From contig NC_087261.1 of the NCBI RefSeq assembly GCF_037042905.1, forward strand, positions 25,172,001-25,236,000: DNA of 64,000 nucleotides, in the 5' to 3' direction. The stretch is from Lytechinus pictus (Eukaryota). The position numbers and the translations under genes were made by a program. The notes beneath the pieces were generated by a model, which saw only the letters and a list, made by a program, of their open reading frames with translations, did no database searches and was not told the origin of the DNA. Shown here piece by piece: positions 1,164 to 62,825 of the stretch. Every line of letters starts with the position of its first letter. The first letter of the stretch is position 1.

Positions 1164-1519
1164 TTATTGAAATTTAAACTTCATACACCCTAAAAAAAGT
1201 TTTATCAAATATTGGGTAAAATGGGAGCATGCATGTTGGTTGAGTAAACAGAAAAAAATTACGCAATGTTGCGTTGAAATAGCCCAATATGGGGTAAAAA
1301 AAAATACCCAGCAAATATGCTTGTCCCCTTTCAACCCAATAATGGGTAAAATGTTACTCATTGTTTTTAGAGTGTAATGTACACGTATAATATCATATTT
1401 TGATATGAATGCAGGGGAAATAAAACTAAGTCATTATTCACGAGTGCGTCATTTCATGGCAGCTAGGACTAGATGCTTCATTGTCTAAAGGAAATGATGA
1501 TTTTAATATTGGAACTCAC

Positions 1520-1813
1520 TTCTAAAGACAGCTATGTATCCAATACCGCCACAGCTCTCAGTTGGGTCTCCTTGGCATGGAACGGAACAGTCTGAATCTA
1601 CTCCCACTCCATGTCTCGCATAGTTATCACTGGCTACCCCACAATAACATTCATTCCCATTTCCAACACCAGCGTATGTATAGTAAGATGTGATGGACAG
1701 TCGACAAAACCAGATGCAATATGAAATATTTATCGATGCACTAGAAAGTTTGAAGTTGCTAGATAACACTCTGTCAGTTTTGTTATCCTTGAAACATCCA
1801 AGATATCCCTCAC
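1520..1813 (-). CDS. Gene A WSC-domain exon (98 codons)
   Basis: GEGYLGCFKD..RVL..ISYC..FC..YAGV.NG.ECYCG..C..PCQGD..ESCGG..AVF; 8-Cys WSC pattern; ATAG|GT acceptor, A|GTGAG donor. Confidence 0.92.
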
Positions 1814-18200: not shown

Positions 18201-21200
18201 CATCATAGCTAGCAGCGGCGTAACAGGGGTCGGTGGCCAGGGGGGGCAAGAGCCAAAAATTTCCCGGTCATATCATGGTATGAACAGGCGTAATGGTGTA
18301 ATGAGGCGACGATTTTAAGAGGGCCGGACATTGCGTATCAGGCAGAATTTATCTTTTGAAAAAAAAAAAAGAGTTTCGAGCGAGCGGAGCGAGCGAGCAA
18401 AAATTTTGACATTTTAATACAAAAATCAAATTTTGTGATAGATTTTGACATGATATCCAAAAAATACATTTCACTCTTTTCTCTTTCCATTCCTTTTTTT
18501 GTGATCTGTACGCCACTGTGAACAGGATTATTTGCGGCAGAAGCGTGCAGAGTAAACAAAACAAAAAACGAGGGGCGCAGTATGACGCATATGCTAAAAA
18601 GCTGCTTAATATAAGTCCCGAGTAAGCGAAGCGAGCGAGAAAAAAAATCACCTTTTCATGAGAATATAACTTTGAGATATTTTTTGACATTATATTCAGT
18701 AAATAAAATCATATCCTACACTTTTCCTTTGCCTTTCTTTCCTCCTTTTTTCTTGGTAGAACTTTTGGGGACCATGGCCCAACCCTTCCATACTCATATA
18801 CGGCAGTGCTATGCGGTTGGGGTCTGGGGCGGAGCCCCCGTAACTTCTTGATATCAAAGCCATTTAAACCTCGCAGAATGCAGCTATTTAATCAAATCGC
18901 GGGTATATACAGAATATAGCTTTTACACAACACATTCATTCAACCCAGTTAAACCAAATATTTTGAGGGGGCAAAACATAGCAATGTGGGAAAGTTTAAA
19001 AAAAAAAAAAAAAAAGTCGCCAGCGAGCAAAGCGAGCTGGAAAAAAATTGCCTATTGAAATTAAATTCTAATTATGTGATAGATTTCTCCATTATATTCA
19101 GCAAATAACACATTTCATTGTTTCCATTCATTTCATTATACGTTGTCTCCTATAATTTCTTTTATTTCCTCTTGGGTGTTGAACCAAGACCCCCCCCCCC
19201 CCCCCCCCCCGCCTGTACGCCAGTGATTGAACGTAAAGCTTAATGTAGGAAGGGTCCCTACAGGGGGCGTGATAGAGCCATTTGAAGGTCATAGATGAAG
19301 AGCCCCTACTGATTGGGGTCTGGGGCTAAGCCCCGGTAGCTTATTTGCATAAAATTTAGCAAGCTAATAGCACAATGTTGTATGCACTCCATCTTTATTC
19401 CTGCTCTTTATTATCTATCCTCGTCAGCCCGGTCGTGTTATTAAGTTTTTATTTCTTGTGCCTTTTCTTTGTTTTCCAATTTAGCTTTTGACTTATTCCA
19501 TTCTACCTTCATTTCCCGCTATTGTTTGTCATTTTGTGATCTTTCCCATCATGCTATTGCACTATTTCGGAATGATTTGTTCTTTCTCACATGTTCTTCT
19601 TTTGTTCTTCTTCCCGCTTTCCTTCCTTTTCCATTTCAAAAAAATATATATTTTTTGTTTTCTTTCCACTTTTCCCTTTCTCTTTCCTTTTCCTCCTTTC
19701 CTTTCCCTCTTTTCTTCCCCTTTCTTTCTCCCTCCCTTTTATTTTTTTCCCTTTTTTTTTTCCCGGTGAAATCCGCCAGGGGGGCAACTTGCCCCCCTGC
19801 CCCCCCCCCCCCGCCCCCCGCCTGTTACGCCACTGATAGCTAGAAAATATTTTCAACAAACATGGCAATAGATGTTGACGTTGCTGGCCGTCCATTGTTG
19901 TGATTGATCGGATCAATCGCAACTCTTTGTAAGACGGGGCCCAGGGCGTCTGTAGAAGGGGGCGTTGGGCGACTGCCCTCCCCCTACGTTTAAAAAAAAA
20001 AAAAATTAGCGAGTAAGGAGAAAGACTTTCACAAATATAAGTTTCCGTCATCTAATTATTTTGTATCCTTATCATTCAATTATAATTATGAATATTAGAA
20101 CTACCGAAGTTCATGATAGCTCATTTCGGGTAAATCAAGAAAGCTAGAATAATTTTTGTTTGTGTCCAATTAAGATTTTGGTCAAGTTATCGTTCAAGTT
20201 GTGTATTTTCGGATCGCATTCCTGGATACAAATAGCACACAAGATGGGTTAACGTATAAGCAACAATATAACAATATAACCCACTTTTAACTCACTTTGG
20301 TCAAGAGATGGAGGTTGTCCTTATATACATGTACTCAATTTATGTTTGAAATGACTTTACCTGGAGTTTGACTTTCCCACTACCCCTACAAAATACCTAG
20401 GCGCCGACCCTCGTCTAGGCTACTTTCAATTGGTGGTATTTTGATAGCATTCTATAGATTTGTGTTTCAAAATTCTAGTTTAGACTAGGTTTAAACCAAG
20501 GTTTAATTATCAGAAAACCACCGATAGCGTTCAAGAATGATACTCACTGCTAAATACAGCTATGTGTCCTGCCCCACCACAGCTGTCCGTGGGGTCTCCT
20601 GAACATGCAACATGACATTGATCGTCCGATCGTTTTCCATGTCTAGTATAGTTATCACTCGCTTCACCACAGTAACATTCTTTTCCATTTTCAACGCCAG
20701 CGTATGTATAGTTCGCATCAGATGATTGGTTACAGAAATTTATGCAAGACGAAATGGTCATGTTTGGAACTTGAGTCATATAATCACCGGTGAATACTCT
20801 ATCATTACCTGTCCCGCCCTCGAAGCAACCAAGATGATGTTCTCCTGTTTGAAATATAAACATAATAATTAGTTTATTAGAATAAATCGGGCAAGTCCAC
20901 CCGATCAAAAAGATGACTTGTGCCGATAGAGAAATTAAAAGAAGCATAAGACTGAAATGTCCTTATCTGCATCTAGATTAGATGTAGCTAATGTATCAAA
21001 TTTTTCATTCATTATTTATATCATTTTATTTGTAGTTTATTTATACAGGGTAGCATTGTCAGTTTAGGAACTGCTTTCATCATGGCCCTTTCCGCATGAC
21101 ATACAATTTGTTGTGATTAATATAATTTCATCAGTAATATTTATTTATTTATTTGCCGTTTTATTTCAACAGGGTAGCCCTTTCAGTTTATTAAAACTGC

Positions 21201-24200: not shown

Positions 24201-27200
24201 ATTACCATGACAAGATGCTGCTCCTGCTGGGGAGCACCCCGATGCATGTGGTAATGTAGGACATGCTGACAGGCTACCTTCACCTAGAAATTCAACATGA
24301 ACATGATAAACAACAGTCTGTTTATTTACGTCTGCAAATCTTAAAATATGTTTTAAATTTAATGCAGGCACAATGAAGGATTTAGGGGGTGATTGAAAAG
24401 ACAGAGCCCCGTATTCTGATAGCAGGTGTAATTTAACCCTAGTCTAAAGTTAACCCTGGTTTAAATAAACATCCTCTAAACCTCACCTCTGGTCTAAGTG
24501 TAGTTTAATTTTGGTATTATGATAGCCAGGTTTAACTAAACCTGGGTTAAACCCGGGTTTAAATTTATTTTTGGAAATAATCAGCCTCTTTCGACCAAGA
24601 CTAGCAACCTTTGGGTAAATTACTGCTGCAGGGGTGACTGCAACAAAGTTGAAAAATGTCACTAAAGTTGTTTTTTTCTCAAAAATTTGGATTTTATGAA
24701 AACTGATTACAACTATTGTAGTGAAAGAAAAACATTCATCACCCATATATGATAAGGATTTTTTCATTAAGATTATCTTTATATTTCTTACTTACTAAAA
24801 CATTTCAATCTCAAACCGAGTGACTTGCACAGTTTTTTTGTGTATCAGTCCCATTTATTGCTTTTCATGTATTGTTTGTCAAAATCTAAATTGAATAGAT
24901 TCCTCTCGACATCTTTATTTTAACTTTAGTTGAAGTAGACCTAAGGGAAAACTTTTGTAACTTTTGAGACTAGTCTTGGGTCTAACATTAGGCCTAGATC
25001 TAGCCTAGGCCCAAGATCAATATCCGTCTGTTTGGAGGAGAATTGAACATTGGCATTGGCTATCGGAATACGGGCCAGAAAGTCATCCCTGCATTCGTAT
25101 CGTTGAGAGTAGATAAGTGATGGATAAGTAAATAATATTAAACCACATATAGAATGTTTAAACATCTGACAAGTAGAACTCAAAGCTTTGGACTGTACAA
25201 CAAAGACATTGATGGTATAGGCGAACTATACCCCCTCCATCTTATATCCACATTTACTTTTTTTCCGATGGGAGGCTGCTGGAACACTGACGTATAACAA
25301 TTAATTCTACTTCATAGGTAAAAATCGACGATGTAAAATTAGGTCGCGATTCTAGACAGTTTAAATTGGCAGATAAATTGTTACATCTGCCTCCAAACTG
25401 ACCGCTGGTTTTTTATTTCTAAATTTGGTTTGTTTGGATTCGTTTTGGCCAGTTTGAATGTGGCATCAGTAAACCTTTTATTTTTCTAGAGACAGTATTA
25501 CAGTATTGGTGGTTTGGGATGAAACGGGCATGGAGGCACAATCACTACATGTATATGCAGCTCCCTGGTCAAGGCAGGGAGCGACACAACGGCAATGTGT
25601 TTTATATGGAGTTATTACAGCTCTTATCCGTGTTGGCGATGCGCTCTTCACCGTGTTCATAGCAGTTTGAAATTGTCCATAAACCGCCAACTCTATGCAC
25701 CGACAACCTTTTCGGCCATATGTGATATTTACTAAAGAGTTGTGAAACTAAACACACATCTGACAGGGGAACCCCGGTGGAGTGGTCCACCTGCACACTA
25801 CAAGTCAGTTCTGGAGGAGAGACCTGCGGGTCATAGTGAGTCAGTTCGCTTTACGTTTCCCATGTATCGGTGACGCCAAAACAGTAAACTACATTTTTTT
25901 TTTTTAATAAAGAATATAAATTTACTAGTTTAGGAAGGTACGTAAGAGTATTTTGTGAAATATATATTAAATGTATGTGTTTACTTCCGTTACAATCCAA
26001 CCCAATGACAGGATTTGAATTCTGTCCATAAGGTGTGGTCTTCACTGCTAGGCTTGCTCCTGTGAATCCTAACTGTCTGCAGATGACGATGACATCATTA
26101 ATGTCAAGATTCATTCCACATGTCGTCTCCCAATCGCCGCCATCTTGCTTGACCTCTACTGTACCTTTATTAGATGCTGGACCTCCAATTAATTGTACAT
26201 CTATCAAGAAAGGGCAACGTGTGTAAATGAATATGAATCTAGGAGAGAATAAAATCTGCGATTAGGTTTAGCTTTGAAAAATGCAAAAGAGAAGAACTTC
26301 TTCCAAGTTACAACTGTCACTCGATTCTCTACAGACAATATACTTGTATCAGATTTTCAGAAACACAGAAAATATCTGATCACTATCGCGATTTTTTCCT
26401 TCATATGGATTCCGATATATCGAAGTTATTTAGGTTACAATTTGTCTTTCTTTTCATTGTTGTAGACTTTTTCTTTAATCACTTAAAAGTACTTTTTAAG
26501 ACCCCTCAAAACAATAGGGCAGACGGGCTAAAATCAATTAAGCACATTACGGCGTTTTTCATCTTTGAACAACATGATGTCATGCAATTAACGTAGCCTT
26601 AGATCATATAAAGGACATGTCCACCCCACAAAAAGTTTATGTGAATAAAAAGAGAAAAATCCAACAGTCATGACACTGAAAATTTGATCAAAATCGGATG
26701 TAAAATAAGGAATTTTGAAAGTTTTGCTTAGTTTCAGAAAAACAGTTATATGCATATCCTGATCGGTATGCAAATAAGGGGAGTGATGACATCAATCACT
26801 CACTATTTATTTTGTATTCTATAACATGAAATATGATATATTCTATTTTTTTCCTCATTCTCCTGTGAAACAAAGTTTTCATCCTCCCTGAACATATGGA
26901 AAAAACATTGTTATATCATTCAATGTTTCAATCAAGTTGGTCCTTAAGGTCAAATCTGTAAAAATTGAAATATTGCATGATTCAAACAATAAAAAGCAAA
27001 AAAAAATTTAGTGAGAGGGGAACATCATCGATTCTCTCATTTGCATATCACTGAATTGTACATATAACTTTTTTGTGAAAAAAAGGCAAACCTTTAAAAT
27101 GTCATAACTTTCTTATTTTACACAAGATTTTGATGAAACTTTCAGCTTTATCCTCGTTTGATTTTTCTCTCTTGATTCAAGTCAACATTTTTAAGGGGTG

Positions 27201-27341
27201 GACTTGACCTCTAATAACGATAAAACCCATGATATTTGGCAGTCTGGTTTGTTTACCTGTTATGACGCAGCTGACCATGTGATTACTGTACTGCATGAGA
27301 AGAGTCATTAGGAACACGAGGATGATCCGATGCCAATTCAT
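14448..27341 (-). CDS. Gene B: complete SRCR-WSC-mucin stalk-TM receptor with Tyr-rich tail, 592 aa
   Basis: Exons 27341-27257, 26200-25985, 24283-24206, 20844-20548, 17004-16966, 16818-16597, 15681-15594, 15201-14448; total 1779 nt = 593 codons including stop. Confidence 0.88.
15594..15681 (-). CDS. Gene B transmembrane exon
   Basis: [28 protein letters not shown]; phase 1 in, phase 2 out. Confidence 0.9.
16597..16818 (-). CDS. Gene B Ser/Thr-rich stalk exon (74 codons)
   Basis: GSSPPLTTSLLTSTSQTATSS..(S)n..GPQGKSNLPLAGNST; poly-Ser encoded by (TCA)n. Confidence 0.85.
16966..17004 (-). CDS. Gene B 39-nt linker micro-exon
   Basis: ISATPMTRPTKPM; TGCAG acceptor, G|GTAAGT donor; homologues in C and D. 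Confidence 0.8.
18043..19941. mobile_element. PIF/Harbinger-like MITE with CAG target duplication (related copy at ~12104-12267)
   Basis: CAG|GGCCCCGTCTTACAAAGAGTT...AACTCTTTGTAAGACGGGGCC|CAG. Confidence 0.8.
18213..19835. mobile_element. hAT-like non-autonomous element nested in the MITE
   Basis: TIRs CAGCGGCGTAACAGG/CCTGTTACGCCACTG; perfect 8-bp TSD ATAGCTAG. Confidence 0.85.
20548..20844 (-). CDS. Gene B WSC-domain exon (99 codons)
   Basis: GEHHLGCF..MTISSCINFC..YAGVENGKECYCG..CHVACSGDPTDSCGG. Confidence 0.92.
21040..23237 (-). mobile_element. Degenerate CR1/L2-group LINE reverse-transcriptase remnant
   Basis: IDGISPRLLK, WKVAKVSPIFK, DLKKAFDTV and FKYLGVILD motifs, broken by stops and frameshifts. 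Confidence 0.85.
24206..24283 (-). CDS. Gene B SRCR C-terminal exon
   Basis: SEGSLSACPTLPHASGCSPAGAASCH. Confidence 0.88.
24405..25077. mobile_element. Harbinger-like MITE
   Basis: Inverted ends GCCCCGTATTCTGATAGC / GCTATCGGAATACGGGCC; internal palindromes. Confidence 0.5.
25985..26200 (-). CDS. Gene B SRCR N-terminal exon
   Basis: [41 protein letters not shown]; 216 nt. Confidence 0.92.
27257..27341 (-). CDS. Gene B signal-peptide exon
   Basis: [28 protein letters not shown]. Confidence 0.82.
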
Positions 27342-38742: not shown

Positions 38743-39490
38743 TTACATAGTATACAGTTCATTTTCAACCATCTCCATTTCATCATACTGATCACCAGAA
38801 AACGAGTCATTAGCTTTAGCGAAGAGATCCTGATCTCCATCCGGCTTTCCTCGGGATTTATCGGGCATCGCGTACAAACTGCCGACATCTTCCGAAGTAT
38901 CGTCCGAACGGTAATTCCGGTTTCCATTCTCATCTGGCATGGCAGACAGACTGTCCATATCTTCCGAGGTGACGTTTCGTTCGCTGTTCTTACCGGGCGC
39001 GGTGTAAACGGCGCTCATTCTGTTGGTCACCTTCGCCGAGGCGATTGGCTGCTTAGTATTTTCAAAAGAAGAATAGGGCGCAATTCCGAGATTAATTCTC
39101 TCGTAGCCGTTCTGTGCTCCGTTTCCGTTCTTCTCAGGCATGGTGTAAAGGACGCTTAATCGGCCGTTGCTCTTCTGCGGGATGTCAGTGGTCCCACGTG
39201 ATGTATATGGCGTCATTTCATCGTCTTGGGTTTCATCCATTGTCCCCTCATATATATTCGACGATTTCCTGGGATTAAGATTTACAAGGAGAACATTCTT
39301 GCCTCCTCTAGAAGAATTCGCGCTACTGTGTGCTTGTGCCCCAGGTTGATAGCCTCTGGCGGACGACGCATCTGCCACTGCACCGTTGGGGATACCGAAA
39401 TCATTTATCTCATCATACACTGGAGGCCTGCAGACTGGAGTCAACGTGGCACTTTGTGAAGAAGCGATACCCTTTATCCTATCTTGTGAC
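38743..39490 (-). CDS. Gene C cytoplasmic tail exon
   Basis: Homologous to the B tail; ends [11 protein letters not shown]. Confidence 0.92.
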
Positions 39491-42400
39491 CTGTAATTAT
39501 TTTTTTTATATAATTAGGAAGAAATATGAACAATTTTATACATTTCATAGCGGGTATCCGCTTGAAGTATTTTTGTCGTGAATCTTAGCGCCACATTTAT
39601 GGCCGCTCAGGATCTCAACTTTTAAAGCGAGGATGGAGATTATCTGATTGCTTAGTTTCCCATTGATGTTGAAGTGTTTAGGAAAGACAAGAACATGACA
39701 GAGCAACTTCGAAAGTCATTATCTTTAAATTTAACTGTATTTTTATAACAACATAAACACCGTCACAATTGTAGTCAGCAATCACGTTTTATATCATTGT
39801 ATTTTCGTGGAATTATCTTTCTATTTCACAGTTTCATTACTACCATTATATCTATAAAAATATACGGTTGCTACAAACCTCCTTGTGAAACAAACGATGG
39901 CGACGATGACTATGATGATGATCACAACAGCAGCCACTCCTCCACCAATCCCTGCATACAAGGCTGTGTGAATCAACATTACTAATTATTCCGCTCGATT
40001 ATACGTTTAAAATTATCGTATAAACTATTCTTAATGCAAAAGTGTCAAGAACCTCTTCAAATGATAAAAAGTTGCATGAATATATGGTAACGGGTTTCTT
40101 AATTCCTACTGTTTTCATGCGTTTTGATTGAGGTTGATGGACCTGCGACAATTTTAACTCTTATTCCCATGCAGTGGTCATGGTGGTTGCCTTGGGGGTT
40201 TTCATCATGGGAGAAGTCACTGATTTTCTGTTACCAAATTGCCTGTGTTACCGCCCGCGCGTGTTTCATTCGAATTGGCATTTAGTGGGTCTTGATGATG
40301 AAATATAACTCAGATAACTTATTACGCAATATACATGTATACCTTTATCCTGGTACTACATTAATATAAAAAATTATTGCATTTCCTCACTATTATTACT
40401 GTGACTGTTATCATTTGGTTTAAATATGATTCGTGTTGCTATCTTAAAAGAAAGGAAATATGGAAATATAAGTAGAAAAAGAAAAAAATATTGAAAGAGT
40501 AATTGTAAGCGTAAGGTTAGCTGAAAATATATACAACAGTTGTCAGGGGTTCGGTAAATTACCTGTGCTATTTCCTGCCGTAGGAAGATTGGAAGTTCTT
40601 TGAGGTTCCGTAGGTGATGATGCTGNNNNNNNNNNNNNNNNNNNNNNNNNNNNNNNNNNNNNNNNNNNNNNNNNNNNNNNNNNNNNNNNNNNNNNNNNNN
40701 NNNNNNNNNNNNNNNNNNNNNNNNNNNNNNNNNNNNNNNNNNNNNNNNNNNNNNNNNNNNNNNNNNNNNNNNNNNNNNNNNNNNNNNNNNNNNNNNNNNN
40801 NNNNNTTGTTGTAACTTCCTGGTTAGTGGATGGTATAGTGGATGTCGTCGTAAGTGGTGAAGTGGCTGTGTCAAAATGAAAGAACATTTAGATTAATTGA
40901 CTTTATTACTAAATGTCACATTTATTACTAAATGTCATACATTTTCTATCAATTTTACATAATGCATTGTAATATGGCAATTTGAGCTAACACAGCCGCG
41001 ACTCATAAATATTTTGTTTTAAGATGTCCTTGAATATTTTTCAATTATTCATTAGTTATTTCTTGCATTCCAAAGAGAATATGTTGTATTGGGCCAGCCG
41101 AGAAGATTCGCCGGCAATCCGCTCGAAGATGTCGTTGACGAAGCTGTTCATGATCGTCATGGCCCGGCTATGAATTCCATAAATAAAAAAATATCAAAAA
41201 GTCGCCATTTATGCAATGATACATTTCAGCCCTCACCCTTCAACCATATTCTTCTTAAAAAATAAAATAAATGGAAACTTAACTACATTTCCCAGATTGG
41301 GTTGATATAATATCAAACCCAGACTGTAGATGTATCTGTATTATTTAACATTATAAATGCAATGATCTTTTTGATTTATTAACTATAATGTTTGGTATTT
41401 TCATCAGCTACAGAACAGGTAGTGAAGTTCAAATCTAAGACTCTTGAATTAACTCAGTGAACATAGCTAATTCTTGTACCTTTTCCCCGCTAGAAGCCTC
41501 TATTGTCTAGCAGTCTCTATTGTCTACTTTCCATTGTAAATTACAAAAATGCCAGACATTGCAGTGCCTCATTTAATATGCGTGCCTAACAAACCCTAAC
41601 TGAGACATTCTGGAATATTCTTATTATGCAATAAACTTCCCCAAGAGAAAAATAGTTAAATGAGTGAATATACATGTAGTTTCTCTTACTATTTTTCTTA
41701 TACATAACACAGGTACGTATCATAATTACAAAAATGTGCTTATAATATCCCCTTTTAGGTTTGAATATCAAAGATTTTCAGCTCGCGCTACGCGCTCTCA
41801 TTATTTGATCAATGAGATATACATCCGTTTAATGGCACCGTCCGTAAAATGTCTCTATTAGATCAGTATACCTGGCAATTGAGCGCACTTCGCGCGCCAA
41901 AGAAGTGATTCAATTTTCTGCTGGTGCCGCCCCCCCCCCCCACCGCATACAGTGACCCCGGTACGCCAGTGTTAATAAATGAGTACTACTCGTATTAACT
42001 TGATTAGTAGCTGTTAACTTTTTAATAATATTCGATTTCAAAATCTATTTTGCTAAAATCAAGATTCGTCATATTTAGTACATATACAGTATTGTCATAA
42101 TAAGAGAGGAAACATACCCAGTACCGTAGTCGGTGTGTTCATTGTCATGGCGGCTGATACTGCAATTGCATTTTTTTTTTTTATTAAAAGGAAAGAGAAA
42201 ATTAAGATTTTTATCAATTTCACCAAATGACAATCAAATTTACAATACATGTCTAAATATCACAAATATTTTTATGATAATACATTTTTAAAAAATGAAG
42301 TAGAGAAGTACAAGAAACGGTAAACCCAGCGTACTGTTTCATCTGTTGAAACGATTTTGTTACTGCCGTATGTGTTTAGATTTCTTCTCATAAACATGTA

Positions 42401-45400
42401 TTGCATTGTGTTTGTATTTATTGATTATTCCGTTCAAATAAACAAACAACATATCATTACAAAGTCAAATATATCAAAAAGTATGTCAATCATAATTATT
42501 CATAACATAGAAGAAAAATGAATTCGAACTGTATAAAACTGACGTTGCCAAAATAGATAACAACAGAATAGAACGACAATATCATGTTTTAATTTGTTAA
42601 TAGACCAGGGTAAACGTTACAAACATGGTGAGTATGAAGTTTATAGTCGATTTTTGCAACATTAGTTTTGATATTACATAAATAAATGTACATGTTGTAC
42701 TTACTAATGGATTTGTCTATACAAATACGGTGACACGTTTCTGTTCGTATCTTCTTAGACCCCCCTACCCTCCAATTTAAAAATGTACAAATTAGAATTG
42801 TATTAAAACGAACAAAATGAGATGTATCTCCTCAAATGAACATGATGAAATATTAAAAGGTAATGATACACCATTGCCTGGAAAATCAAATTCATTTGAT
42901 TTAGAATTCATACTTCTAAAGACAGCTATGTATCCAATACCACCGCAGCTCTCAGTTAGGTCTCCATGACATGGAACGGAACAGCTTGAATCTTCTCCCA
43001 CTCCATGTCTCGCATAGTTATCACTGGCTTCTCCACAAGAACAACTCGATCCATTTTCTACTCCAGCGTACGAATAGTAAGGTGTGGTAGACACTCCACA
43101 AAACCAGAAGCAATATGAAATACTCATCGACATACTATTAATGACGGAGGTGCTAGATAACACTCTGTCATCCGAAACATCTTTAAAACATCCAAGATAT
43201 TCCTCACCTATATGGATAAAGTAATGAATTTTCGCATTGAACTTCGAAACGTTAGGAATATAAAAAAATTGTCTTACAATCATAACGATATGAAAGTCAA
43301 TTATGTTCAATGTTGCCGAAATATGAAATTACATATGCATTACCTCAAAACATTGTAAATTACCTAATTATTATGAATCTCATATTTTTCTTTTTTGAGC
43401 TATATTCTTAATACTAGTCAGTTCTAGTGAATTAATTATTTATTACACCTGGCTTACCACCCAGCAGTAACCTAATATGTTCCTAATAGCTACTCTGCCT
43501 ACATTTCCCAGGGTGCAAAAATAAAACATTAAAGGACAAGTCCATCCCAACAAAGTGTTGATTTAAATAAAAAGAGACAAATCCAACAAGCATAACAGTG
43601 AAAATATCATCAAAATCGGATGCAAAACAAGAAAGTTATGACATCTTAAACTTTCGCTTAATTTCACAAAACAGTTTTATGCACATCCTGGTCGGTATGC
43701 AAATTAGGAAACGGATGACGTCATCCACTCACTATTTCTTTTGCAATTCAAACAAAAAGTAAAAAAATTGTGAGTGAGGGACATCATCAACTGTCTCATT
43801 TGCATGTCACTGACTTGTACATATAATTGCTTTTGTGAAAAATAAGCGAAACTTTAAAATTCTTATTTTACACCCGATATTGATGAAATTTTCAGCGTTA
43901 TGCTAGTTTGATTTTTCTCCATTTATTCAAATCAAAATTTTTCTAGATTGGACTTTACCTTTAACAGCGCTTCATAGCTTATTGGATAGTACAGTTATAC
44001 TCCATTTTTTATTCCATTTTTTTAATAAATTGGCATGCTTTAATAGATCAACAATTAGTGTGTACGCAAAGATATATATTTTGTATTATTGCATACTTGA
44101 ATAAATCCGTTAAAACATGTATAGGTATTTTGTTTAAGTATTTTTATTGTATTAATTGAACATCATTGACATTGTATAGCAAAAAATTGTTCGTATATAT
44201 TTATTCTCTAGAAAAATGCGAATTATAACAAGACAGAGAAAAAAAGTTCAGACCAATTGGAGAAATTCCCGACACGGGCACTTGCTTTCTGGGTTTATTT
44301 TGCGTTCTTCCATCAACATAAATGATATATTACATTCATTGTTTTTATTGATTTATAAATCTTATGTGAAATTTTAAGAAAAAAATTTCTAATTGAACTG
44401 AATTAAGAGAATCAAGCCACAGTACGCCCACAAATGCCAAATGAAGAGTAAAGGACAGGAAATTCACTTTCGTTAAAGTAATACCGACGGGACATCAGTG
44501 CCGAAATTCAGTTTTTAAAGCAAGAAGGGTATGGTTTAACATTTTTTTATTTTCATACCCCTTTGTCCCTTACTTTTTGTTTTATTCTCCTTGAACGAGT
44601 CTGTAGGCTTTAATTTGTATATTAAAATATATGAAACAATTTGTAGATGTTGGAAATGGAAATAAACTAAATTAAATGAAATGAAAAATGAAATGGCATA
44701 ACCAATTTCATTGCTACAGAACATTATTGGCCATTAAGCCTGTGGTATCAACAATCGTTGTTAAAAATGACTATTCAATATCGCATGTGTTAAAATCTTT
44801 CACTTCTTGTGACGGAAGTTGTATTTGCCTATCAAATTGATGAGGTTGAGTTATAACTTAATCATGAGTCCCCTAGTAGACTGTCCATATCCAATTCACA
44901 TAATTGATTCGGATTCAGTATAGTAATGTTGTTTCTTTAATCACCATGGCAAGATGCTGATCCTGCTGAAGAACACTCGGATGTAGGTGGTAATATAGGA
45001 CATTCTGATAGGCTTCCTTCACCTAGAAATACAACGTAAATATGATAAAGAACAATCTGTTGATTTACGTCAACATACTTTTTTCTTAAAAATATATTCA
45101 ATATTTATAAATGTGACATAATAAAAGATATGATGAGTCCTTGAAAAGGCTTTACTTTCTTTGGGAGTAGATGTATAATGGAAAAAAGTGGAAAATATTA
45201 AGCCACATATTCATTTTTTTTTTATTTAACAAGCTAGGTTCAAAGCGCTGGACTGTATATAAACAAAAATAATGATGGATATCGGCGAACACTACACGTA
45301 ATAGAGAGTTTTCGCAATCACGACGCGGCCGCTCTCTACAACGCACCAATTCCTTTGAAAATGCAAGTCAATTCACAATGGATGGCTAAGAGGCTTTTAT

Positions 45401-48400
45401 CGAAAGTTGATGGATCATCCGAATCTTTGGACCTGACAAACAATTGCAAGTATGTCGTTTTCCAGAGTCACGAGAGGACGCACAGTCGGCCGTGGCGAAA
45501 CCAAAGTGCGCCAAAAGTCATTTTGGTCAATTTAAAAATTTCAATTTTGTTTCATGCCCAGTTGAATAACAACACATTGAAAAAAGTAATTTCACTAATT
45601 TTTTTCATGTATAGATCTGAAATTGGTACCACACAATCCTGATATATTTCCATTTCGTGTGGATGGGTTAAAAGTGGATAAAATACACCCTTCACGTGGT
45701 ATATAGCATGATTATTCCACGAAATATTAAAGCTGATTATTCATGTTTTTAACATTCATATTAGAAACGTTTAGATTTCCGCGGATTTCCGTCTAAATTT
45801 TATCACGTACATTTTATCTGTTGTCTAAGCTTAAAGTTGATGCTAGATTTAGCTGCACCCTCCTGCAACCGTTTATGTTAGATATTACTTGACACATTAC
45901 CCCGAAAAATTGTCATTTTTATACCGCGCAGTCATCCCAGCGAACCGTATGGGGAGTACATTGCCATTCAGTTTTGCATGGCGAGGTCCATTCTTCTTCA
46001 GTTCTACGAACATGACATGAAGTTCCGGACATAATGCAAACAAAATGAAGGTTGATAACGCAATGTAAGGGCTACCCACCCGTCTTCCAGAGATAAAATT
46101 TACCTGTAGAATCAGTTAAGACAAAAATCCTCATCATACTACATTCTTGGTATCACGTTGGCTTGAAATTATATTCAGTCGATTCTACGCCCACAATTAC
46201 CCGTGATCAAAATGTTATAGTAAAAATATTACACGGAATATAATTTTGGAGCACTTTCAACTCACTCTGGCCCTCTGTGCGACACTGCTGCGTGTTGCTG
46301 TCCGGTCCACCAATTTCAACATGCAATTTTCAAATTGCAAGTTATGTCTCCGTAATAAATTTCTTCCAATGGGAAGTTGTTAGAACATCGACGTACAAGA
46401 ATTTATTTTTCTTCTTTAGGAGAAAATCAATACTGCAAAATTAGATGACGGTCCTAGACAGTTCGAAACAGATTTAGCAGATGACTTGTTACACACTCTG
46501 AAACGGATTTCGACTTCATGCGCTCTGTATAATTCACCGCGATATACCCATAAGTCTATTCACATCCTATTCAGATCGTTTTTCCGCCATGACCAGCGGA
46601 GAAGCGCCTCGATAACACTACGATATTAATCAGACCATCGGAACCGAATCCAAACTGATCACTGCCATTGGTTATTTAGTTGGTCTGTAGTCGATTTTGG
46701 CAAGTATGACTGCGGTATTAATAAACATGATATTTTCTGGAGATAAGTTGAGCCACAAAAACTATGTACAAAATGTATGCGGGAAGAACCAGCATGTTAT
46801 TTTTTTAAAGTCTTTTCACTTGCTAATTCTCTATAAATACTAACATCCTCTAAAAGAAAAATAACTGCCATGTGAATTTGCTCCTTTCTGCCTGCATATT
46901 GATCGGGTTTGTTAAGGTTTTTTTTATATACACTACATTACCAATAGAATTACCATGGCTCAACTTGCCCCATGTTTGCTAGCTCAACTACCCCAGTCCG
47001 AACACATTTCTTATGGATCCATCATGTAAAAGACTATGACAAGAATGAAGATCCATACCTGGACTAACAATGTTCTTATGTCTTTACTATATTCAAAGAC
47101 TTGTGTGGGTAAAAAGCACTTAAAGGGGAATCCAACCCAAATAAAAACTTGTTTTTATGAGGAAAAGAAAAATCAGACAAGTTGATTGGTGAAAGTTTGA
47201 ACAATATTGGACAAACAACAAGAAAGTTATGAATGTTTAAAAGTTGTAAATATTGGTAATCACTATACCAATGGAGATTTCAAATTGGCCGCATATGGGA
47301 TGTCATAGTGATGTAAGGCAAGGACTACTCTTCCATGTACTCCAAAACATATTATGGCAAAAATGTCATTTTTCCCAAAAGTTTTATTTCAAATTATATT
47401 TTTCTTTCATGGGGACATAAAACAATATACTACCTGGGTTATATTTAGATTACTGCCCCAGGGGAATGGGTACTTAGGAGAAAACCACAAATCCCTGATA
47501 ATAAAGTACATGGCCTATGGGAAAGTTGTCCTTGCCCCTTGTCATAATTTACTGACCCAGTTGCCAATTTGAAATCTACATAGTATTAGTGATCTCAATT
47601 TTGAAGCAGCTATAACTTTCTTATTACTTGTCCGATTTCTTTCAAACTTTCACCATTTTGTTTAATTTATTTTTCTCCTCCCCAACACAACATTTTACGA
47701 CCAAGGCTGGATTCCCCTTTAATTTCACACCCTTTTTTTTTTACTTTTTTGGGCTGAAATGTGTCTTTTTTCCCTCTAAAAATTATAAAGTACTTTTTGT
47801 TTCAAATTTGAAAACAATGTGGTGGGGTTAGGGGTTTGCCATGGGTCATCAATACATCACACCACCGCAATGTCTGACTCATTCATTATTGGCCTGGGGC
47901 TGGTGGCTCAACTTGCCTCTATGCTCAACTTACCCCGCCTTCCCCTACTCTTTTACAGGTATTTTTTCAGGTTGCCCTTGAAGGTGGTCACTGAAGTCTG
48001 GGTTTTCAAACTCTGAGGGAGAGAATTTCACAGACTAGGCCCTGCATGAGCAAAGGCCTGTTCCCAGCATGGTTTCTTAGCGACTGGAATTTGTAAGAGA
48101 TTAGATGATGAGGATCGTAAATTTCTTGAGGGTTGGTAATTATGCATCAAAGACATATTGTAACTGGGGGAGGTTCCATTGACTATATGAAAAATCAAAA
48201 GAAGGTTTTTACTTCCATCGCAACCTAGCCCCATGGCAGGTGTTGAATTCTGTCCATAAGGTGTGGCCCTCATTGATATGCTTGCTCCTGTGAATCCTAA
48301 CTGTCTGCAAATGACGATGACATCATTGATGTCAAGATTTATTCCACATGTCGTCTCCCAATTGCCGCCATCTTGCTTGACCTCTACTGTACCTTTATTA

Positions 48401-48892
48401 GATACTGGGCCACCAACCAGTTGTACATCTATCAAGAAAGGGCAACGTGGTAAAATGAATATGAATCTAGGAGAGAACTAAATTTGAAATGAAACAACTT
48501 CTTCCAAGTTCCAACTGTCACCCATCCCCTACAGACAATATAGTTGTATTAGATTTTCATAAACACAGAAAATATCTGATCACTATAGCGAGTTTTACCT
48601 TAATAGAGATTCCGATAAAATTACATTGAGATTAATTAAGTTATAATGTGTCTTTATTTGTATTATTTTTAAATTTATTATTTAATCACTTCAATGTACC
48701 AACTCATCAAGCGCATTAGGGCGATCTAAACCTTTTACATACATGGTGCCGTGTAATTAATTCTGTATAAATAATAACATGATACTTCACACTCAGGATT
48801 CGTTTACCTGTTATGACGCATCGGACCATGTGGTTACTGTACTGCATTAGAAGAACCGTTAGGAATACGAGGGTGATCCGATACAAATCCAT
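38743..48892 (-). CDS. Gene C: SRCR-WSC-mucin stalk-TM receptor, about 616 aa (stalk exon contains an N-gap)
   Basis: Exons 48892-48808, 48428-48213, 45022-44945, 43207-42914, 42159-42118, 40865-40563, 39963-39879, 39490-38743; same phases as B. Confidence 0.85.
39879..39963 (-). CDS. Gene C transmembrane exon
   Basis: [27 protein letters not shown]. Confidence 0.9.
40563..40865 (-). CDS. Gene C Ser/Thr-rich stalk exon (gapped)
   Basis: [20 protein letters not shown]-[gap][20 protein letters not shown]. Confidence 0.78.
41083..41169 (-). pseudogene. H2B: 87-bp histone H2B coding fragment inserted in an intron of gene C
   Basis: Translates to [29 protein letters not shown]; absent from the homologous intron of gene D (~58510-58535). 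Confidence 0.93.
42118..42159 (-). CDS. Gene C 42-nt linker micro-exon
   Basis: [14 protein letters not shown]; G|GTATGT donor. Confidence 0.8.
42914..43207 (-). CDS. Gene C WSC-domain exon
   Basis: [46 protein letters not shown]. Confidence 0.92.
43533..43960. mobile_element. Kolobok-like element at the site orthologous to 2325-2903
   Basis: Same flanks and TTAA duplication; internal deletion. Confidence 0.7.
44945..45022 (-). CDS. Gene C SRCR C-terminal exon
   Basis: [26 protein letters not shown]. Confidence 0.88.
47124..47718. mobile_element. TTAA-flanked non-autonomous DNA transposon (Kolobok-like)
   Basis: TTAA|AGGGGAATCCAACC...GGCTGGATTCCCCT|TTAA. Confidence 0.75.
47960..48185 (-). 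mobile_element. L2-type LINE ORF2 C-terminal fragment
   Basis: [26 protein letters not shown]. Confidence 0.7.
48213..48428 (-). CDS. Gene C SRCR N-terminal exon
   Basis: [41 protein letters not shown]. Confidence 0.92.
48808..48892 (-). CDS. Gene C signal-peptide exon
   Basis: [28 protein letters not shown]. Confidence 0.82.
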
Positions 48893-56356: not shown

Positions 56357-57113
56357 CTACATAGAATACATTTCGTTTTCAACCATCTCCATTTCATCAA
56401 ACTGATCACCAGAAAAGGAGTCATTAGCTATAGCGTAGAGATCCTGATCACCATCGTACCCATCCGGCTTTCCTCGGGATTTATCGGGCATCGCGTACAA
56501 ACTGCCGACATCTTCCGACGTATCATCCGAAGTGTTGTTCCGGTTTCCATTCTTATCTGGCATAGCATACAGACTGTCTATATCTTCCGAGGTGCCGTTT
56601 CGTTCGCTGTTCTTATCGGGTGCAGCGTAAACGACGCTCATTCTGTCGGCCATTCTCGCCGAGGTGGTTGGCTGCTTAGAATTTTCAAAAGAAGAGTAAG
56701 GTGCAATTGCGATATTAATTTCGTCGTAGCCGTCCTGTGCTCCGTTTCCGTTCTTGTCAGGCGTGGCGTGCAGGACGCTTAATCGGTCGTTGCTGTTCTG
56801 TTTCATCGCAGTGGTGCCACAAGAAGCATATGACGTCAGTTCTGTGTCTGGGATTTCATCCATTGTCCCCTCATATATATTCGATGGTTTCCTAGGATTT
56901 AGATTAACAAGGAGAACGTTCTTGACACCTTTAGAAGAACTCGCGTTACTGTGTGTTTGTGCCCCAGGTTGGAAACCTCTGGCAGACGGTGCCTCTGCAA
57001 CTGCACCGTTGGGGATACCGAAGTCGTTTATCTCATCGTATGCTGGAGGCATGCTGACTGGAGTCAACGTCGCTCTTTGTGACGAGGCGATACCCTTTGT
57101 CCTCTGCTGTGAC
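56357..57113 (-). CDS. Gene D cytoplasmic tail exon
   Basis: Homologous to the B and C tails; ends MEMVENEMYSM*. Confidence 0.92.
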
Positions 57114-60100
57114 CTTTAATGGAATATTGGATACAATTATGGAAAATAAGAAATATTCATAGTTTTCATAACGGGGTATCCTACATTTGTTCCTTTGTTC
57201 TTGTTTGTTTTTATTATGACATTGATATGGTTTCTTTTCAATTACAAGGTTGAGCAGTATCTGGTTGCTTAATTTTCCATTAATGTACCAGTGTTTAAGA
57301 AAGGCAAAAACATGACAAAGCAAATTCGAGAGTTGTTATCAAATTTAGCTTTGTTTTGATACCGACTTAATATCGTAGCAATCGTAATCTTTGATATATT
57401 TTAGAATGATTTTACATGTGAGGAATTCTAACAGTTATTCTCAAATTTATATTTGTTGTACTACCATTTTATGTATTAAATAAAATTGCTACAGACCTTC
57501 TCTTTCTGATACATGCGATGGCGACGATGATTATGATGATGATTATAACAGCAGCAACAGCTCCGCCAATCCCTGCATATAAGCCTGATTAAATCAACAA
57601 TACCGATCATTCCACGAGATTATTCATTTAAAATGATCATATAAGTATTCTTAATAGGGAACTGTGACAAACCTGCGTGAAGTAACATGTTCCTGAGTGA
57701 AGCCTATTTTCAAGTTTTTAAATTCAGTTTGATTAGTCTGCAACATACATTCATCACACTCTAATTGCAGTACGATGGTTGTCATGGGAGTTTTCTTCAT
57801 CATGATTTGTTGTAACCGGACTTGAGTTGCATTGGAATTGGAATGGATTGGGACTTGTTGATGAACATCATTTGATCACTATTAACTCAACACAAATTAC
57901 ATCCATTATCATTATAAATTTATCATTAATATTTCTTTCATTTTTAGTATTATCATCACTATCATTATCATCTTCATTATCATTATCGCTATTAGGTTTT
58001 GGTGTAAATATGATTCCTTGCTATTATGAAAAGATAGGGAAAAATCAGAGAAATTATAAAATAACGAAAGCACAAGAAGTGTAGGAATCACGTAAATCAA
58101 ATTTGTAAGGTATTCATTAAACTAGTTGAACTACCTGTGCTATTTCCCGCTGTGGGAAGATTGGACGTCCCTTGAGTTTTCAGAGATGATGAAACTGATG
58201 ATGACGATGACAACGATGTCGAAATCACAATTTCGTTACTTGTTGTGGCGGTCTGGTTGACGGTGACGGATGTCGTCGGTGGTGGTGAGGTAACTGTGTC
58301 AGATCAATAAACATTTACATTGAATTCAGGACCAAATTTTTCTATCATTAGTCAATGGATAGAAATACATAAGTTGGCAATTTGAGCTAACAAAGTAGCG
58401 ACATGTTTATCGAGATTAGCCCAGCTCATTGTGCCATCATTGTAGATTAAGCATGATAAGGAGAGACGATTATTTCTTGTTTGAATATTACTTGGTAATT
58501 TGTTCAAGTTGCATTCGAAAGGACCATGAATTCCATTGACGGCCATTTTTTTTTACAACAGTAACAATAGAGAATATTAAAAAGCTGCCGTTTATGCAAT
58601 CATACACTTTCCCTCACCCTAAGAACCATGTCCTTTTTAAACAAATTACATGTAAAATCAACTGCATGTGCCAGATCCGGTTAAAGTTATATCACACCCA
58701 GTTTGTATTTTTTCTGAATTATTTAACATTATAAATGCTATGATTTCTTTGATTCTTAATCATAATGCAATTTTCTCTGCTATCTGTATGATAAGTGAAA
58801 TAAAGATATACAGAAATCAGGAACTGAAGTGATGGGAAATATAATTCTTGAATTGAACCTCAAGCATCATCAATTATCATGACATATGTAAATGCAAAAG
58901 CATGGTAACCATGTATTGCTCTACTATACATTGTCTTCACTTGCCTGTGTTTGGATATTAGCCATCGAAATATTTCTATGGTGTTTAGTCCATTAGTCCT
59001 ATTAATTCAAAAATTTAACTCTAATATTTCAAAACCCATATTTTTTCTAAAAATGATGATTCTGCATATTATGAAGATGCATTTCCACAATAGGTAGGGA
59101 AACATACCCATTGATTCAGTTGGCGTATTCATCGTTGTCATCGTGTCGGCTGATACTGTATTTCCATTTAAACGTTTTAAGGGAGTGAGACAATGAAATA
59201 TAGTGAAGGGATCAAATTAACACTTCTTCAGTCGAAATGAATAGCAAGCATTATAAACAAATTGTTAAATGTGAACGATTTAAAAAATAATGCACATGCG
59301 AACCAAACGATATATGGTATTGATTGAAACGATTGTGCGTGTTCGTTTAGATTTTGTCTCATAAGCAGATATTGTATTGCATTTATTGATTTTCTATTCA
59401 CACTAAAAAAAATATAACATTAAAAAGTACAATATATCACAGAGCATGTCAGTCATAATAATTCAAAGGAAAAATGAATGATAAATTGGAACTTAGCTAC
59501 ATAAAACTGGCTTTGTTTAAAATGAATAACAAAAAAACTAAAACAGAACGGATATATCCTCCTTTGATATGTTGATAGGCTGGGATAAAAAATTAAAACA
59601 TGATGTATATTAAGTTTTAAGGCGATGTTTGGTACATATTTCTGAATATTCAGTAATTCAGTGAACATGCTGTACTTACTGATGGATTTGCCTATACAAA
59701 AAGATACTTATACATAATTTTGTTTGTGTCTTGATAGACACCCCTCCCCTGAGATTAAAAAATATACAAACCTGGGCCCGTTTCCACAAAAACTATCATT
59801 ACTGTAGCTTCACTGGCGGGTCCAGGGTGGGCTCACAGCCGGCCCGTGCCCCCCCCCCCCCTCCTCTTTGAGAGGCACAATTTAACTTTGTAATGTAAAA
59901 ATGCCGTTAAAACAGAAGTGTGCCCCCCTCCCCCAATTTTTAAAGTGAAGACCTTTCTTTTTTTCTTTTTTTTTCTTTTTTTTTTTTGCTTGTCAAATAT
60001 TTTCTTGGACGAAACCCCTTATTTTGGGTTAAAAACCTTCTTCTTTTTTTTTGCTTGCTTGTCAATTTTTTCTTCGGAAAAATGTGCCCCCCCCCCCCCT

Positions 60101-62825
60101 TCGAAAAATCCTAGATCCGCTCCCGGGTAGCTTTGCCATGCAATGCTAAATGGACATATAATCCTTGACTTTGATCGGTTGTTGACCAATACCATAGTAG
60201 CTATTGGAGGGCAAAGTTACCATAATAGTAACTTTTATGCAACGGGGCCCAGAACCTTTAGGTTTCAGTTAAATCGAACAAAATTAGATGTACCTCCTTT
60301 AGTAAAAGCAAGTTGATACACCCCTTCATTGTCTTGGGAATCAAAATCATTGAATTTAAGAATGATACTCACTGATAAAGACAGCTATGTATCCAATTCC
60401 ACCACAGCTCTCGGTAGGGTCTCCTTGGCATGGATATTGACAGTTCTTATCTGACATGTCTGGTCCTACTCCATGTCGAGTATAATTATCACTGCCTTCA
60501 CCACAGTAGCATTCATTTCCATTTTCAACACCAGCATAAGTATAATTAGCTGTGGTAGACTCATTACAGAACTGGATGCAATATGAAATGGTAATCGGTG
60601 AACTATCTGTCAGACTTTCGCCAGACAACGCCCAGTCATTCCTGATATCCACAAAGCATCCAAGATATCCATCACCTATATGAGAAAGAACGATAACGTT
60701 ATAATGCTTGTTTAAGCGTGTTGGACATTTAAAGGTCAAGTCCACCCCAGAAAAATGTTGATTTGAATAAAAAGAGAAAAAATCAAAGAAGCATTATATT
60801 GAAAGGTTTTACGGTAAACACCATGTATGTAGTCCTAAAAAGGACTGTTTGTTATTCTTTCTTGAATATATGTTAGCTCTGAAAAGAACTGTTATCGACG
60901 TTTCGACCAGCGTGTTCTGGTCGTCAAGTTGGTCACGCTGGTCGAAACGTCGATAACAGTTCTTTTCAGAGCTAACATATATTCAAGATAGAATAACAAA
61001 CAGTCCTTTTCAGGACTACATACATGGTGTTTACCGTAAAACCTTTCAATATTCTCTCCACCATGGAAACCTTCAAAGATCATCAAACAAGCATTATGCT
61101 GAAAATTTCCATTTATTTTAATTTAGGATAAAAGAGCTTTTTGATTAATTGTCTTGCTCACGGGCATATAGGTGCCCTGGCCGGGGATCGAACGCTGAAC
61201 TTTTGGCCACGGCACCGTTTATTGGATAGATTCACCAATATTTCATCGAAATTTAATTCCATCTGGAGCCTTATCATAAATAAAATATCTGCGTATTTTC
61301 GTCTTCTTTAGAACTTCTCAACCATGGAATGGGCTGGAAATTTCAGGACATGATCTTTGTAGGCCGATTCCGATTACTATATAAAATCCGTGCTAAAATT
61401 GTCATTTCAAAATGAAATAATAACATTACCAAGACAGGGAGCTAGATTTGAATTTAAATCTTAAAGGACGGAAATGCGTGTTGCACAATTCAAAAGTACA
61501 AGCTAAATATTTTTGTTTGTTTCATCCCTATTAATTAGTTTAATAGATTGGTAGTGACCTTAAAATATGTTTCCAAATTTTTCTAAGTACAATATATGTA
61601 CCATCGCACAAATACCATGTTTTATTTAGTATGCTCAATAAAATGAAAAGCATAATTTAGTTTTATTTTAAGGTGTTTACACAAATTTGACGGAAACGTT
61701 ACCATGACAAGAAGCTGCTCCTGCTCGAGAACATCCCTCTGTATTTGAGAGCGAACACTCAGACAGGTATGTGTCATCTGACATATCAAATTACAGAATA
61801 TGACACCAAGTAATTAGAATTTCATCATACCTTTATCAAACGTGGCAAAAATGAATGTGAAATGTAACGAACAAGGCACAGTAAGCCGTATTCGAGAGCA
61901 CAACCCTCTTTCTTGCATGTACCTGAAAAATTATTGATTTAGATTTGCACATTGTTTACTGATAAAATGAGAGTAAAATTTGAGGTTGCGCATCACACAA
62001 AGAATACTGATAAGCGCAGAAAATACCTCTAATTAGTGGCCATACATGTAGGTCTATCATAAAATCTCATAGACCATCGGCTTCGGAAGATGAAGTTTGT
62101 TTGCCCCGATTTCAATTCAACGTAATTTAGGCTATATCCATTTCAGTAGTCACGGTAGTATGAATAATTCATATTTATCAAATAAATTTAACCGAAACGC
62201 CATTACTTTCATCACAAAATAGCCCATGGTTGGGAGTTGAATTCTGTCCATAAGGCGTCTCCCGTATTGCTCTATTTGCTCCTTTGAATCCCAAATGTTT
62301 GCAAATTACTACGACATCGGAGGTATCAGTATTGGCCCCACATGTTGTCTCCCACGTCCCGTTGTCTATCTTGATCTCAATTGTCCCTTTATTAGAATCT
62401 GGACCGCCAACAAGTTGCACATCTGTCAACAGAATGCAAAGAGATGGAAAATTACTAAATAAGTCCTTTGCAAAGTCTCGTTCACGTTCTAGTTTTATAT
62501 TTGAAATTATAAACTTTCATTTAATATGTAGAGATCTAAAAAGACAATTAAACCTGAATTTTTTTAGGCAGCGTTTGATGGCATTATATGTTTTGTTATA
62601 AGTATTTATTGATAACCTTCCAAGGAGTTTTCACGCATCATTATGGTTTCGAACCTGGGTTACCGGACTAAGAGAAAACCGCCCTACCAACTGTATATAT
62701 TATGATTCAAATTGGTGAGATTTTGAATGAGAGTACAAAGGAATATGGTTACCTGTTATGGCACAGATGCTGAACCGGATCCAAAGAATCACTAACAAGA
62801 CAATGGTTATCCAATTTCGATTCAT
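56357..62825 (-). CDS. Gene D: complete SRCR-WSC-mucin stalk-TM receptor, 572 aa
   Basis: Exons 62825-62753, 62422-62207, 61777-61703, 60675-60373, 59155-59108, 58293-58135, 57584-57497, 57113-56357; total 1719 nt = 573 codons including stop. Confidence 0.88.
57497..57584 (-). CDS. Gene D transmembrane exon
   Basis: LYAGIGGAVAAVIIIIIIIVAIACIRKR. Confidence 0.9.
58135..58293 (-). CDS. Gene D Ser/Thr-rich stalk exon (53 codons)
   Basis: [53 protein letters not shown]. Confidence 0.85.
59108..59155 (-). CDS. Gene D 48-nt linker micro-exon
   Basis: ISADTMTTMNTPTESM. Confidence 0.8.
59775..60250. mobile_element. Harbinger-like MITE carrying a hAT-like insertion (~59811-60126)
   Basis: GGGCCCGTT../..AACGGGGCCC ends; GTAGCTT duplicated around the inner element. 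Confidence 0.55.
60373..60675 (-). CDS. Gene D WSC-domain exon (101 codons)
   Basis: GDGYLGCF..ISYCIQFC..YAGVENGNECYCG..CQYPCQGDPTESCGG. Confidence 0.92.
60796..61052. repeat. Near-perfect 119-bp inverted repeat with a 19-nt loop (Penelope-like remnant)
   Basis: Arms 60796-60914 and 60934-61052; flanking direct repeat ATCAAA(G/C)AAGCATTAT. Confidence 0.85.
61703..61777 (-). CDS. Gene D SRCR C-terminal exon
   Basis: NDTYLSECSLSNTEGCSRAGAASCH. Confidence 0.88.
62207..62422 (-). CDS. Gene D SRCR N-terminal exon
   Basis: [41 protein letters not shown]. Confidence 0.92.
62753..62825 (-). CDS. Gene D signal-peptide exon
   Basis: MNRNWITIVLLVILWIRFSICAIT; ACAG|GTAAC donor. Confidence 0.8.

Follow-up and report, generated by a model that had tools for sequence, protein, structure and literature searches.

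Faster divergence of a WSC exon than of its adjoining intron in a tandem SRCR-WSC receptor family of Lytechinus pictus, with probable diversifying selection on a loop

A 64,000-nucleotide (nt) stretch of the Lytechinus pictus genome (GCA_037042905.1, CM073242.1, 25172001-25236000; hereafter the window) contains a tandem family of minus-strand genes, A-D, that encode SRCR-WSC receptors. Here, we describe that the WSC exons of genes A and C have diverged from each other faster than the intron that adjoins them. The exons differ at 53 of 294 nt (18.0%; 81.8-82.0% identity), versus 193 of 1823 aligned bases (10.6%) in the upstream intron (Fisher P = 5e-4), and a more distant noncoding tract also differs by 10.6%. 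An earlier note on this DNA had claimed that the exon of gene C is more variable than the adjoining intron; this claim is borne out, and the exon borders given there are exact (Table 1). The amino acid changes cluster in one loop of the WSC domain, which is probably under diversifying selection. Diversifying selection, relaxed constraint, and clustered mutation or exchange between paralogues would jointly explain the excess in the WSC exon, an account that we hold at about an even chance.

The window matches at 100% the locus that was fetched through an annotated protein (L001), and its base composition is that of AT-rich animal DNA. Two runs of N in the window, at 9280-9633 and 40626-40805, were kept as N; the first is spanned by L001 and the second by P0030. 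A tblastn search of the window with the exon as a query found four WSC exons, all on the minus strand and spaced about 20 kb apart. The gene models were fixed from annotated proteins, and the exons were searched singly, without spliced joins of our own. Gene C (P0030, XP_063968680.1, 616 amino acids (aa)) is a full-length receptor, whose exons encode, in order, the signal, the SRCR domain, a short Cys-rich segment (exon 3), the WSC domain, a Ser/Thr/Pro-rich stalk, a membrane span, and a tyrosine-rich tail. The family would consist of Lytechinus type I membrane proteins, in which a signal peptide, one SRCR domain, and one WSC domain are followed by this stalk, membrane span, and tail. Gene A (P0005, XP_063967904.1, 229 aa) has the first four exons only, followed by intron read-through to a stop, and the NCBI model terminates after six intron codons (window 1-1813 region). 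Exons for the stalk, membrane span, and tail were looked for in the ~15 kb from gene A to the next gene downstream, and none were found. Since this copy stops directly after the WSC exon, gene A would encode only a secreted SRCR-WSC protein.

A 590-aa gene of L. variegatus (L004) is collinear with gene C through the intron and the WSC exon and onward to the tail. The 3′ end of the WSC exon is the exact point at which the homology of gene A with both gene C and this L. variegatus gene stops (L001:15346-25360, L003:1-10000). Judging from this arrangement, gene C is the positional orthologue and the parental copy, and gene A is a partial duplicate that arose in the L. pictus lineage. The present work describes this array from L. 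pictus, together with its gene models and the partial duplication that links A and C.

The excess of the WSC exon is concentrated in its first 150 nt, where 22.7% of the positions differ. Among sliding windows of noncoding sequence, only 0.6% reach 18.0%, and none reaches 22.7%. Base composition and CpG content were rejected as the source of the exon excess, since 28.3 A- and C-specific changes were expected, versus 49 seen (P = 2.5e-4). At the protein level, 27 of the 97 full codons differ in residue; the earlier note had counted the same 27 differences out of a total of 98. Its estimate that the introns (1830-3830 and 43220-44920) are roughly 90% or more identical holds for the aligned bases (90.4%) but not when the 387 gap columns, mostly from two large indels, are scored as differences (73.3%). 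Just upstream of the WSC acceptor AG, in the polypyrimidine and branch-point region, gene A carries a specific 10-base-pair (bp) insertion and several base changes (1814-1832).

With the L. variegatus orthologue as the outgroup, the changes at 1386 intron sites and 294 exon sites were assigned to branches. On branch A, 5.0% of the intron sites and 9.2% of the exon sites changed (P = 0.008), with a ratio of nonsynonymous to synonymous divergence (dN/dS, omega) of 0.50 and a synonymous/intron rate of 3.2. The corresponding values on branch C are 4.4% and 7.5% (P = 0.037), an omega of 1.05, and a synonymous/intron rate of 1.5. On the L. variegatus branch, the intron (6.6%) and the exon (7.1%) do not differ significantly, omega is 0.34, and the synonymous/intron rate is 2.1. 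Both copies were accelerated after the duplication, and dN is above dS on neither branch.

The four exons encode clear WSC domains. Their Pfam WSC (PF01822) scores are 65.5 (A), 65.1 (B), 58.7 (C, the lowest), and 67.1 bits (D), all above the curated threshold of 27.8 bits and with the full profile covered each time. Genes A-D share eight Cys residues at WSC codons 6, 32, 36, 55, 57, 75, 79, and 87, together with a Cys-Gly-Gly motif, and the eight Cys are conserved in all 11 WSC exons of the family, as the earlier note had stated for the copies that it compared. By analogy with Kremen1, these residues are predicted to pair into four disulfides. In gene C, exon 2 scores 40.1 bits against Pfam SRCR (threshold 26.1 bits) over profile positions 1-73 of 100, and the short Cys-rich exon 3 may supply the remainder of the profile.

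The AlphaFold model of the WSC exon of gene C has a moderate predicted local distance difference test (pLDDT) score of 64.7 and shows a strand at residues 3-8, a coil at 9-28, a helix at 29-38, and further strands. Its template modelling (TM) score is 0.71-0.74 against the WSC domain of Kremen1 and 0.65 against yeast Wsc1, and the predicted fold is of the PAN/apple-like WSC type, with a five-stranded sheet on one helix. Because the modelled fold matches that of Kremen1 WSC, the variable segment, which forms the coil between strand 1 and the helix in the model, is assigned to the loop named L1 in the published WSC fold. The WSC domain of human Kremen1 (PDB 5FWS, 5FWT, 5FWV; PMC5014086) is the nearest solved structure by both sequence (E = 5e-11) and fold, and it has the same eight Cys in four disulfides and the same sheet on a single helix as the urchin exons. 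However, Kremen is a Kringle-WSC-CUB protein that binds Dickkopf, whereas the urchin genes have an SRCR-WSC-stalk-tail organization. Neither Kringle nor CUB was found in the exons or annotated products, which contain SRCR and WSC only. We therefore rejected Kremen as the family of these genes, the Kringle-WSC-CUB ectodomain being absent; the NCBI name "kremen protein 1-like" is explained by the shared WSC domain and nothing else.

The protein change between A and C is focused on the L1 loop. Residues differ at 11 of the 19 loop codons (10-28), versus 16 of the 78 codons elsewhere (P = 0.003). The clustering in an N-terminal loop that the earlier note reported is thus real, and the four loop strings that it quoted for A-D are correct. 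In the loop, dN is 0.56 and dS is 0.33 between A and C, giving an omega of 1.73 on about 12 synonymous sites (Fisher P = 0.5). The loop omega against the L. variegatus orthologue is 1.5 for A and 2.6 for C, with about 12 synonymous sites each and neither significant. In none of these three pairs is dN/dS well below 1 at the loop. Nonsynonymous divergence of the loop (18/45) is far above the intron level (P = 5e-7). In the exon outside the loop, A and C show a dN of 0.119 and a dS of 0.279, with an omega of 0.43 (P = 0.035). The N-glycosylation sequons also vary among the copies. The sequons of gene A are Asn-Lys-Thr (codon 10) and Asn-Ile-Ser (codon 28); gene C has lost the codon 28 site and gained Asn-Gly-Ser at codon 51; and in the L. 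variegatus orthologue, sequons are present at codons 28 and 74.

Codon models were fitted to 11 Lytechinus WSC paralogue exons with our own GY94 likelihood, which reproduces the log-likelihood (lnL) and tree length of IQ-TREE exactly. In the codon tree, A and C group with 79% support, and the single omega of model M0 is 0.51. On one tree for the whole exon, M2a is preferred over M1a (2dlnL = 16.4, P = 2.7e-4), with 12.7% of the sites at an omega of 2.9, mostly at codons 10-26. When the two halves of the exon are given their own trees, the 5′ half retains the signal both in the standard model (P = 2.6e-4) and when double and triple hits are allowed (P = 0.021), and the 3′ half has no signal. 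Without gene B and the gap columns, the test of the 5′ half gives P = 1.9e-5 in the standard model and P = 0.0086 in the multi-hit model, with an omega2 of 3.4-3.8 on about 25% of the codons. In this data set, the posterior for omega >1 is above 0.9 at codons 10, 11, 12, 21, 22, 23, and 25 in the loop and at codon 37 in the helix.

The diversifying selection that the earlier note proposed is upheld in part, by the loop omega above 1 and the site class at loop codons, but a series of results in this and the next two paragraphs weighs against it. Over the whole exon, dN (0.19-0.21) is below dS (0.23-0.28) between A and C, and omega is 0.67-0.89 by method, with 0.1-0.4 in older pairs; dN does not significantly exceed dS between A and C. 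The branch omegas of the codon model (A, 0.67; C, 0.90; background, 0.48) are different neither from the background nor from 1, and an a priori partition for the loop gives an omega of 1.43 (P = 0.21 against 1). Adding double- and triple-hit rates improves the whole-exon fit strongly (P = 4e-15), and the preference for M2a over M1a then disappears (P = 0.33). The divergence at synonymous sites, too, is about double that of the intron. In codons with unchanged residues, the synonymous divergence is 0.224, versus 0.106 in the intron (P = 0.025), and each of the three branches has more synonymous change per site than expected from its intron rate (over the whole tree, 22/60 versus 222/1386, P = 1.4e-4). 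Since synonymous sites are elevated too, the intron comparison alone overstates the case. Furthermore, exon 1 (23.8% of nt), the SRCR exon (13.7%, omega 0.32), and exon 3 (21.3%) are all above the intron divergence between A and C, so WSC is not alone in showing the faster exon pattern. Divergence also varies along the noncoding sequence, in which two of 12 non-overlapping 294-site windows reach 17.7% and 18.4%.

Three multi-base clusters account for about one-third of the changed bases. Of the 37 codons that differ between A and C, six differ at all three bases and four at two. In a three-way alignment, 7 of the 9 bases of codons 10-12 and several further bases in codons 19-23 changed specifically in A. 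Six consecutive bases of codons 53-54 changed specifically in C, which replaced the conserved Asn-Glu before the Cys-x-Cys with Ser-Ser. When adjacent changes are merged to single events, the exon/intron ratio is about 1.3-1.6, and neither branch alone is significant, with P = 0.037 for the two combined. Donors for the three cluster strings were sought in the window and in L001-L005 (about 120 kb of the array), and none were found within two mismatches.

Exchange between paralogues is evident from the sequences of several copies. Over exons 1-3, the distance of gene B from A and from C is no greater than that between A and C, although its WSC exon is 36-40% different from both. Exon 3 of gene A differs from that of gene B (24207-24281) at 8 of 75 nt, versus 16 of 75 from that of gene C. 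The intron just downstream of it is C-like and unalignable with B, and exon 3 of A looks like an exon-sized mosaic. A protein from the older L. pictus annotation, P0004 (XP_054772068.1), of which the protein sequence alone was used, resembles C across exons 1-3 and WSC codons 1-21 (19/21) and A at 36 of the 37 residues of WSC codons 22-58, with a breakpoint at codons 21/22. P0004 may represent an allele that arose by recombination, a further paralogue, or a chimeric product of the older assembly. The two halves of the WSC exon give different trees, and the WSC exon of gene B is a mosaic, whose 3′ half barely differs at the codon level from L. variegatus Lv17 (branch 0.014) and whose 5′ half has a very long branch of 2.2. 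Given these mosaics and discordant half-trees, the A-C comparison does not represent one single divergence time. Recombination within the exon, as shown by the P0004 breakpoint and the differing half-trees, can inflate the site-model tests, and recombination inside the 5′ half may inflate those of that half.

These results can be read without any adaptive component, a possibility that we take seriously while rating it below even. The excess would then come from drift under relaxed constraint after the duplication, combined with complex multi-base mutations and small tracts copied from paralogues, which would strike exons more than introns because only exons stay similar enough between paralogues to pair. 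The omegas at or below 1 on the A and C branches, the synonymous divergence of about twice the intron level, the six codons with all three bases changed, and the runs of 6-7 adjacent changes are all consistent with such a history. So are the strong preference for the multi-hit model, which cancels the whole-exon signal, the mosaics in A exon 3, the B WSC exon, and P0004, the lack of an anchor and tail in A, and the altered conserved core residues in C. On the other hand, the clusters have zero donors in the ~120 kb of the array, and purifying selection is still detectable outside the loop between A and C, which indicates that neither copy is a free-drifting pseudogene. The site test of the 5′ half also remains significant under the multi-hit model, and the nonsynonymous divergence of the loop far exceeds that of the intron.

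Alternatively, the introns may be younger than the exons, although we consider this unlikely. Gene conversion or unequal crossing-over between A and C would have homogenised the noncoding tracts, and converted exons were removed or the tracts halted at exons; the exons would therefore retain an older divergence. In major histocompatibility complex (MHC) genes, exons retain older divergence than the homogenised introns. In keeping with this idea, A-C noncoding divergence is very uneven, at about 10.6% in two tracts, with other tracts at 25-27% or too diverged to align. Each of the four exons is more diverged than the intron (dS 0.24-0.73 versus an intron divergence K of 0.114), and P0004 shows recombination between A-type and C-type sequences. 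However, WSC codons 59-97 differ at only 9 of 117 nt between A and C, no more than the intron, and the high-divergence patch has low divergence on both flanks. Moreover, dS on the L. variegatus branch, where A-C homogenisation plays no part, is also about twice the intron rate, and A and C still cluster in the codon tree.

We therefore favor the joint action of selection, relaxed constraint, and unusual mutational input, by which the WSC exon would have outpaced the adjoining intron in both copies after the duplication. In this joint account, amino acid replacement in the L1 loop and where the helix begins (codons 10-12, 21-25, and 37) would be tolerated, and probably favoured, across the family. 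This would be diversifying selection on an exposed surface, with variable microbial or glycan ligands as its likely agents; the L1 loop may bind such a ligand, and we infer that the selection is adaptive. Constraint would also have been relaxed after the duplication, with the membrane anchor lost in A and, in C, residues of an otherwise conserved core motif replaced and a branch omega close to 1. The third cause would be the mutational input itself, with the runs of 6-7 adjacent changes and the exchange between paralogues. Since these runs and the exchange raise synonymous divergence too, the intron understates the neutral rate of the exon. A bolder proposal, which we regard as quite improbable, is that the WSC L1 loop is the specificity surface of an echinoid family of pattern-recognition receptors, whose diversity would come from point selection and ongoing patchwise exchange, with individuals carrying different mosaic alleles. 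P0004 would then be an allele of gene C with an A-type patch, and the gene A product would be a secreted decoy or opsonin.

In the snake-venom phospholipase A2 genes and similar families, exons evolve faster than introns. As here, the exons of recent phospholipase A2 duplicates are more diverged than the introns, and the change is focused on a surface region. However, dN exceeds dS across the mature phospholipase A2 protein, whereas here it does so only in the 19-codon loop and without individual significance, and exchange between paralogues is an extra factor in the urchin case. Multinucleotide mutations can yield false signals of positive selection (bioRxiv 10.1101/165969; PMC6332903). In those false positives, as in the present data, much of the signal comes from codons in which two or three bases changed, and the test becomes weaker once such codons are modelled, but a part of the urchin signal persists in the 5′ half.

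The SRCR genes of sea urchins number in the hundreds and are thought to act in innate immunity. A survey of these genes counted 36 WSC domains and placed 70% of the genes in tandem clusters (PMC10855680); the SRCR-WSC genes in it have the same domain pair and tandem layout as those described here, and that survey ran no selection test. Urchin SRCR families have not been testable for positive selection owing to paralogy, and genome-wide selection scans dropped the SRCR genes because their paralogues are indistinguishable (PMC5521101). The present array is a tractable case, in which the partial duplication is dated and lineage-specific, an outgroup orthologue exists, and most of the protein change falls in a defined loop of 19 codons. 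If the loop does contact a ligand, WSC and not SRCR would be the variable recognition module of these receptors. The case also shows that a comparison of exons with introns can mislead if synonymous sites, clustered mutations, and paralogue exchange are overlooked.

Table 1 Positions of the main features of genes A-D in the window.
Feature	Position	Strand	Remarks
WSC exon, gene C	42914..43207	-	AG acceptor and GT donor, phase 1-1, 294 nt; Pfam WSC 58.7 bits; exact match to P0030
WSC exon, gene A (truncated copy)	1520..1813	-	All four gene A exons match P0005 at 100%; Pfam WSC
WSC exon, gene B	20548..20844	-	P0014; Pfam WSC
WSC exon, gene D	60373..60675	-	Second half of the fused model P0031; Pfam WSC
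L1 loop, gene C (WSC codons 10-28)	43122..43178	-	Hypervariable; 11/19 codons differ from A; coil in the AlphaFold model
L1 loop, gene A (WSC codons 10-28)	1728..1784	-	A-specific multi-base clusters at codons 10-12 (1776-1784) and 19-23
Six-base C-only change (WSC codons 53-54)	43044..43049	-	Three-way alignment; Asn-Glu to Ser-Ser before Cys-x-Cys
Intron between exon 3 and WSC, gene C (exon 3 included at the upstream end)	43208..45073	-	Homologous to A 1814-4007; neutral comparison
Exon 3, gene C (SRCR end)	44946..45020	-	A counterpart 3880-3954
SRCR exon, gene C	48211..48429	-	Pfam SRCR 40.1 bits; A counterpart 6169-6387
Signal-peptide exon, gene C	48809..48892	-	A counterpart 6779-6862
Tyrosine-rich cytoplasmic tail exon, gene C	38743..39444	-	Open reading frame identical to the P0030 C-terminus

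The array extends on both sides of genes A-D, with gene Z (P0008) and gene E. The annotated 857-aa model P0031 is a fusion of the neighbouring genes E and D (window 56357-64000 and L005). The annotated product of gene B has 204 aa and lacks exon 3, although an intact exon-3-like sequence is present at 24207-24281 and stalk and tail exons are found farther downstream (about 14.1-16.8 kb). A tandem array that separates genes A and B, at 10795-11924, has a period of about 154 bp, and its copies are 84-90% identical to one another. A repeat of about 600 bp, which matches itself in both orientations, occurs at 2320-2906, 26609-27215, and 43530-43964 and also at L001 ~21640-22220. Genes A, B, and C each have this repeat in an intron, a further copy lies downstream of A, and it is probably a small inverted-repeat mobile element.

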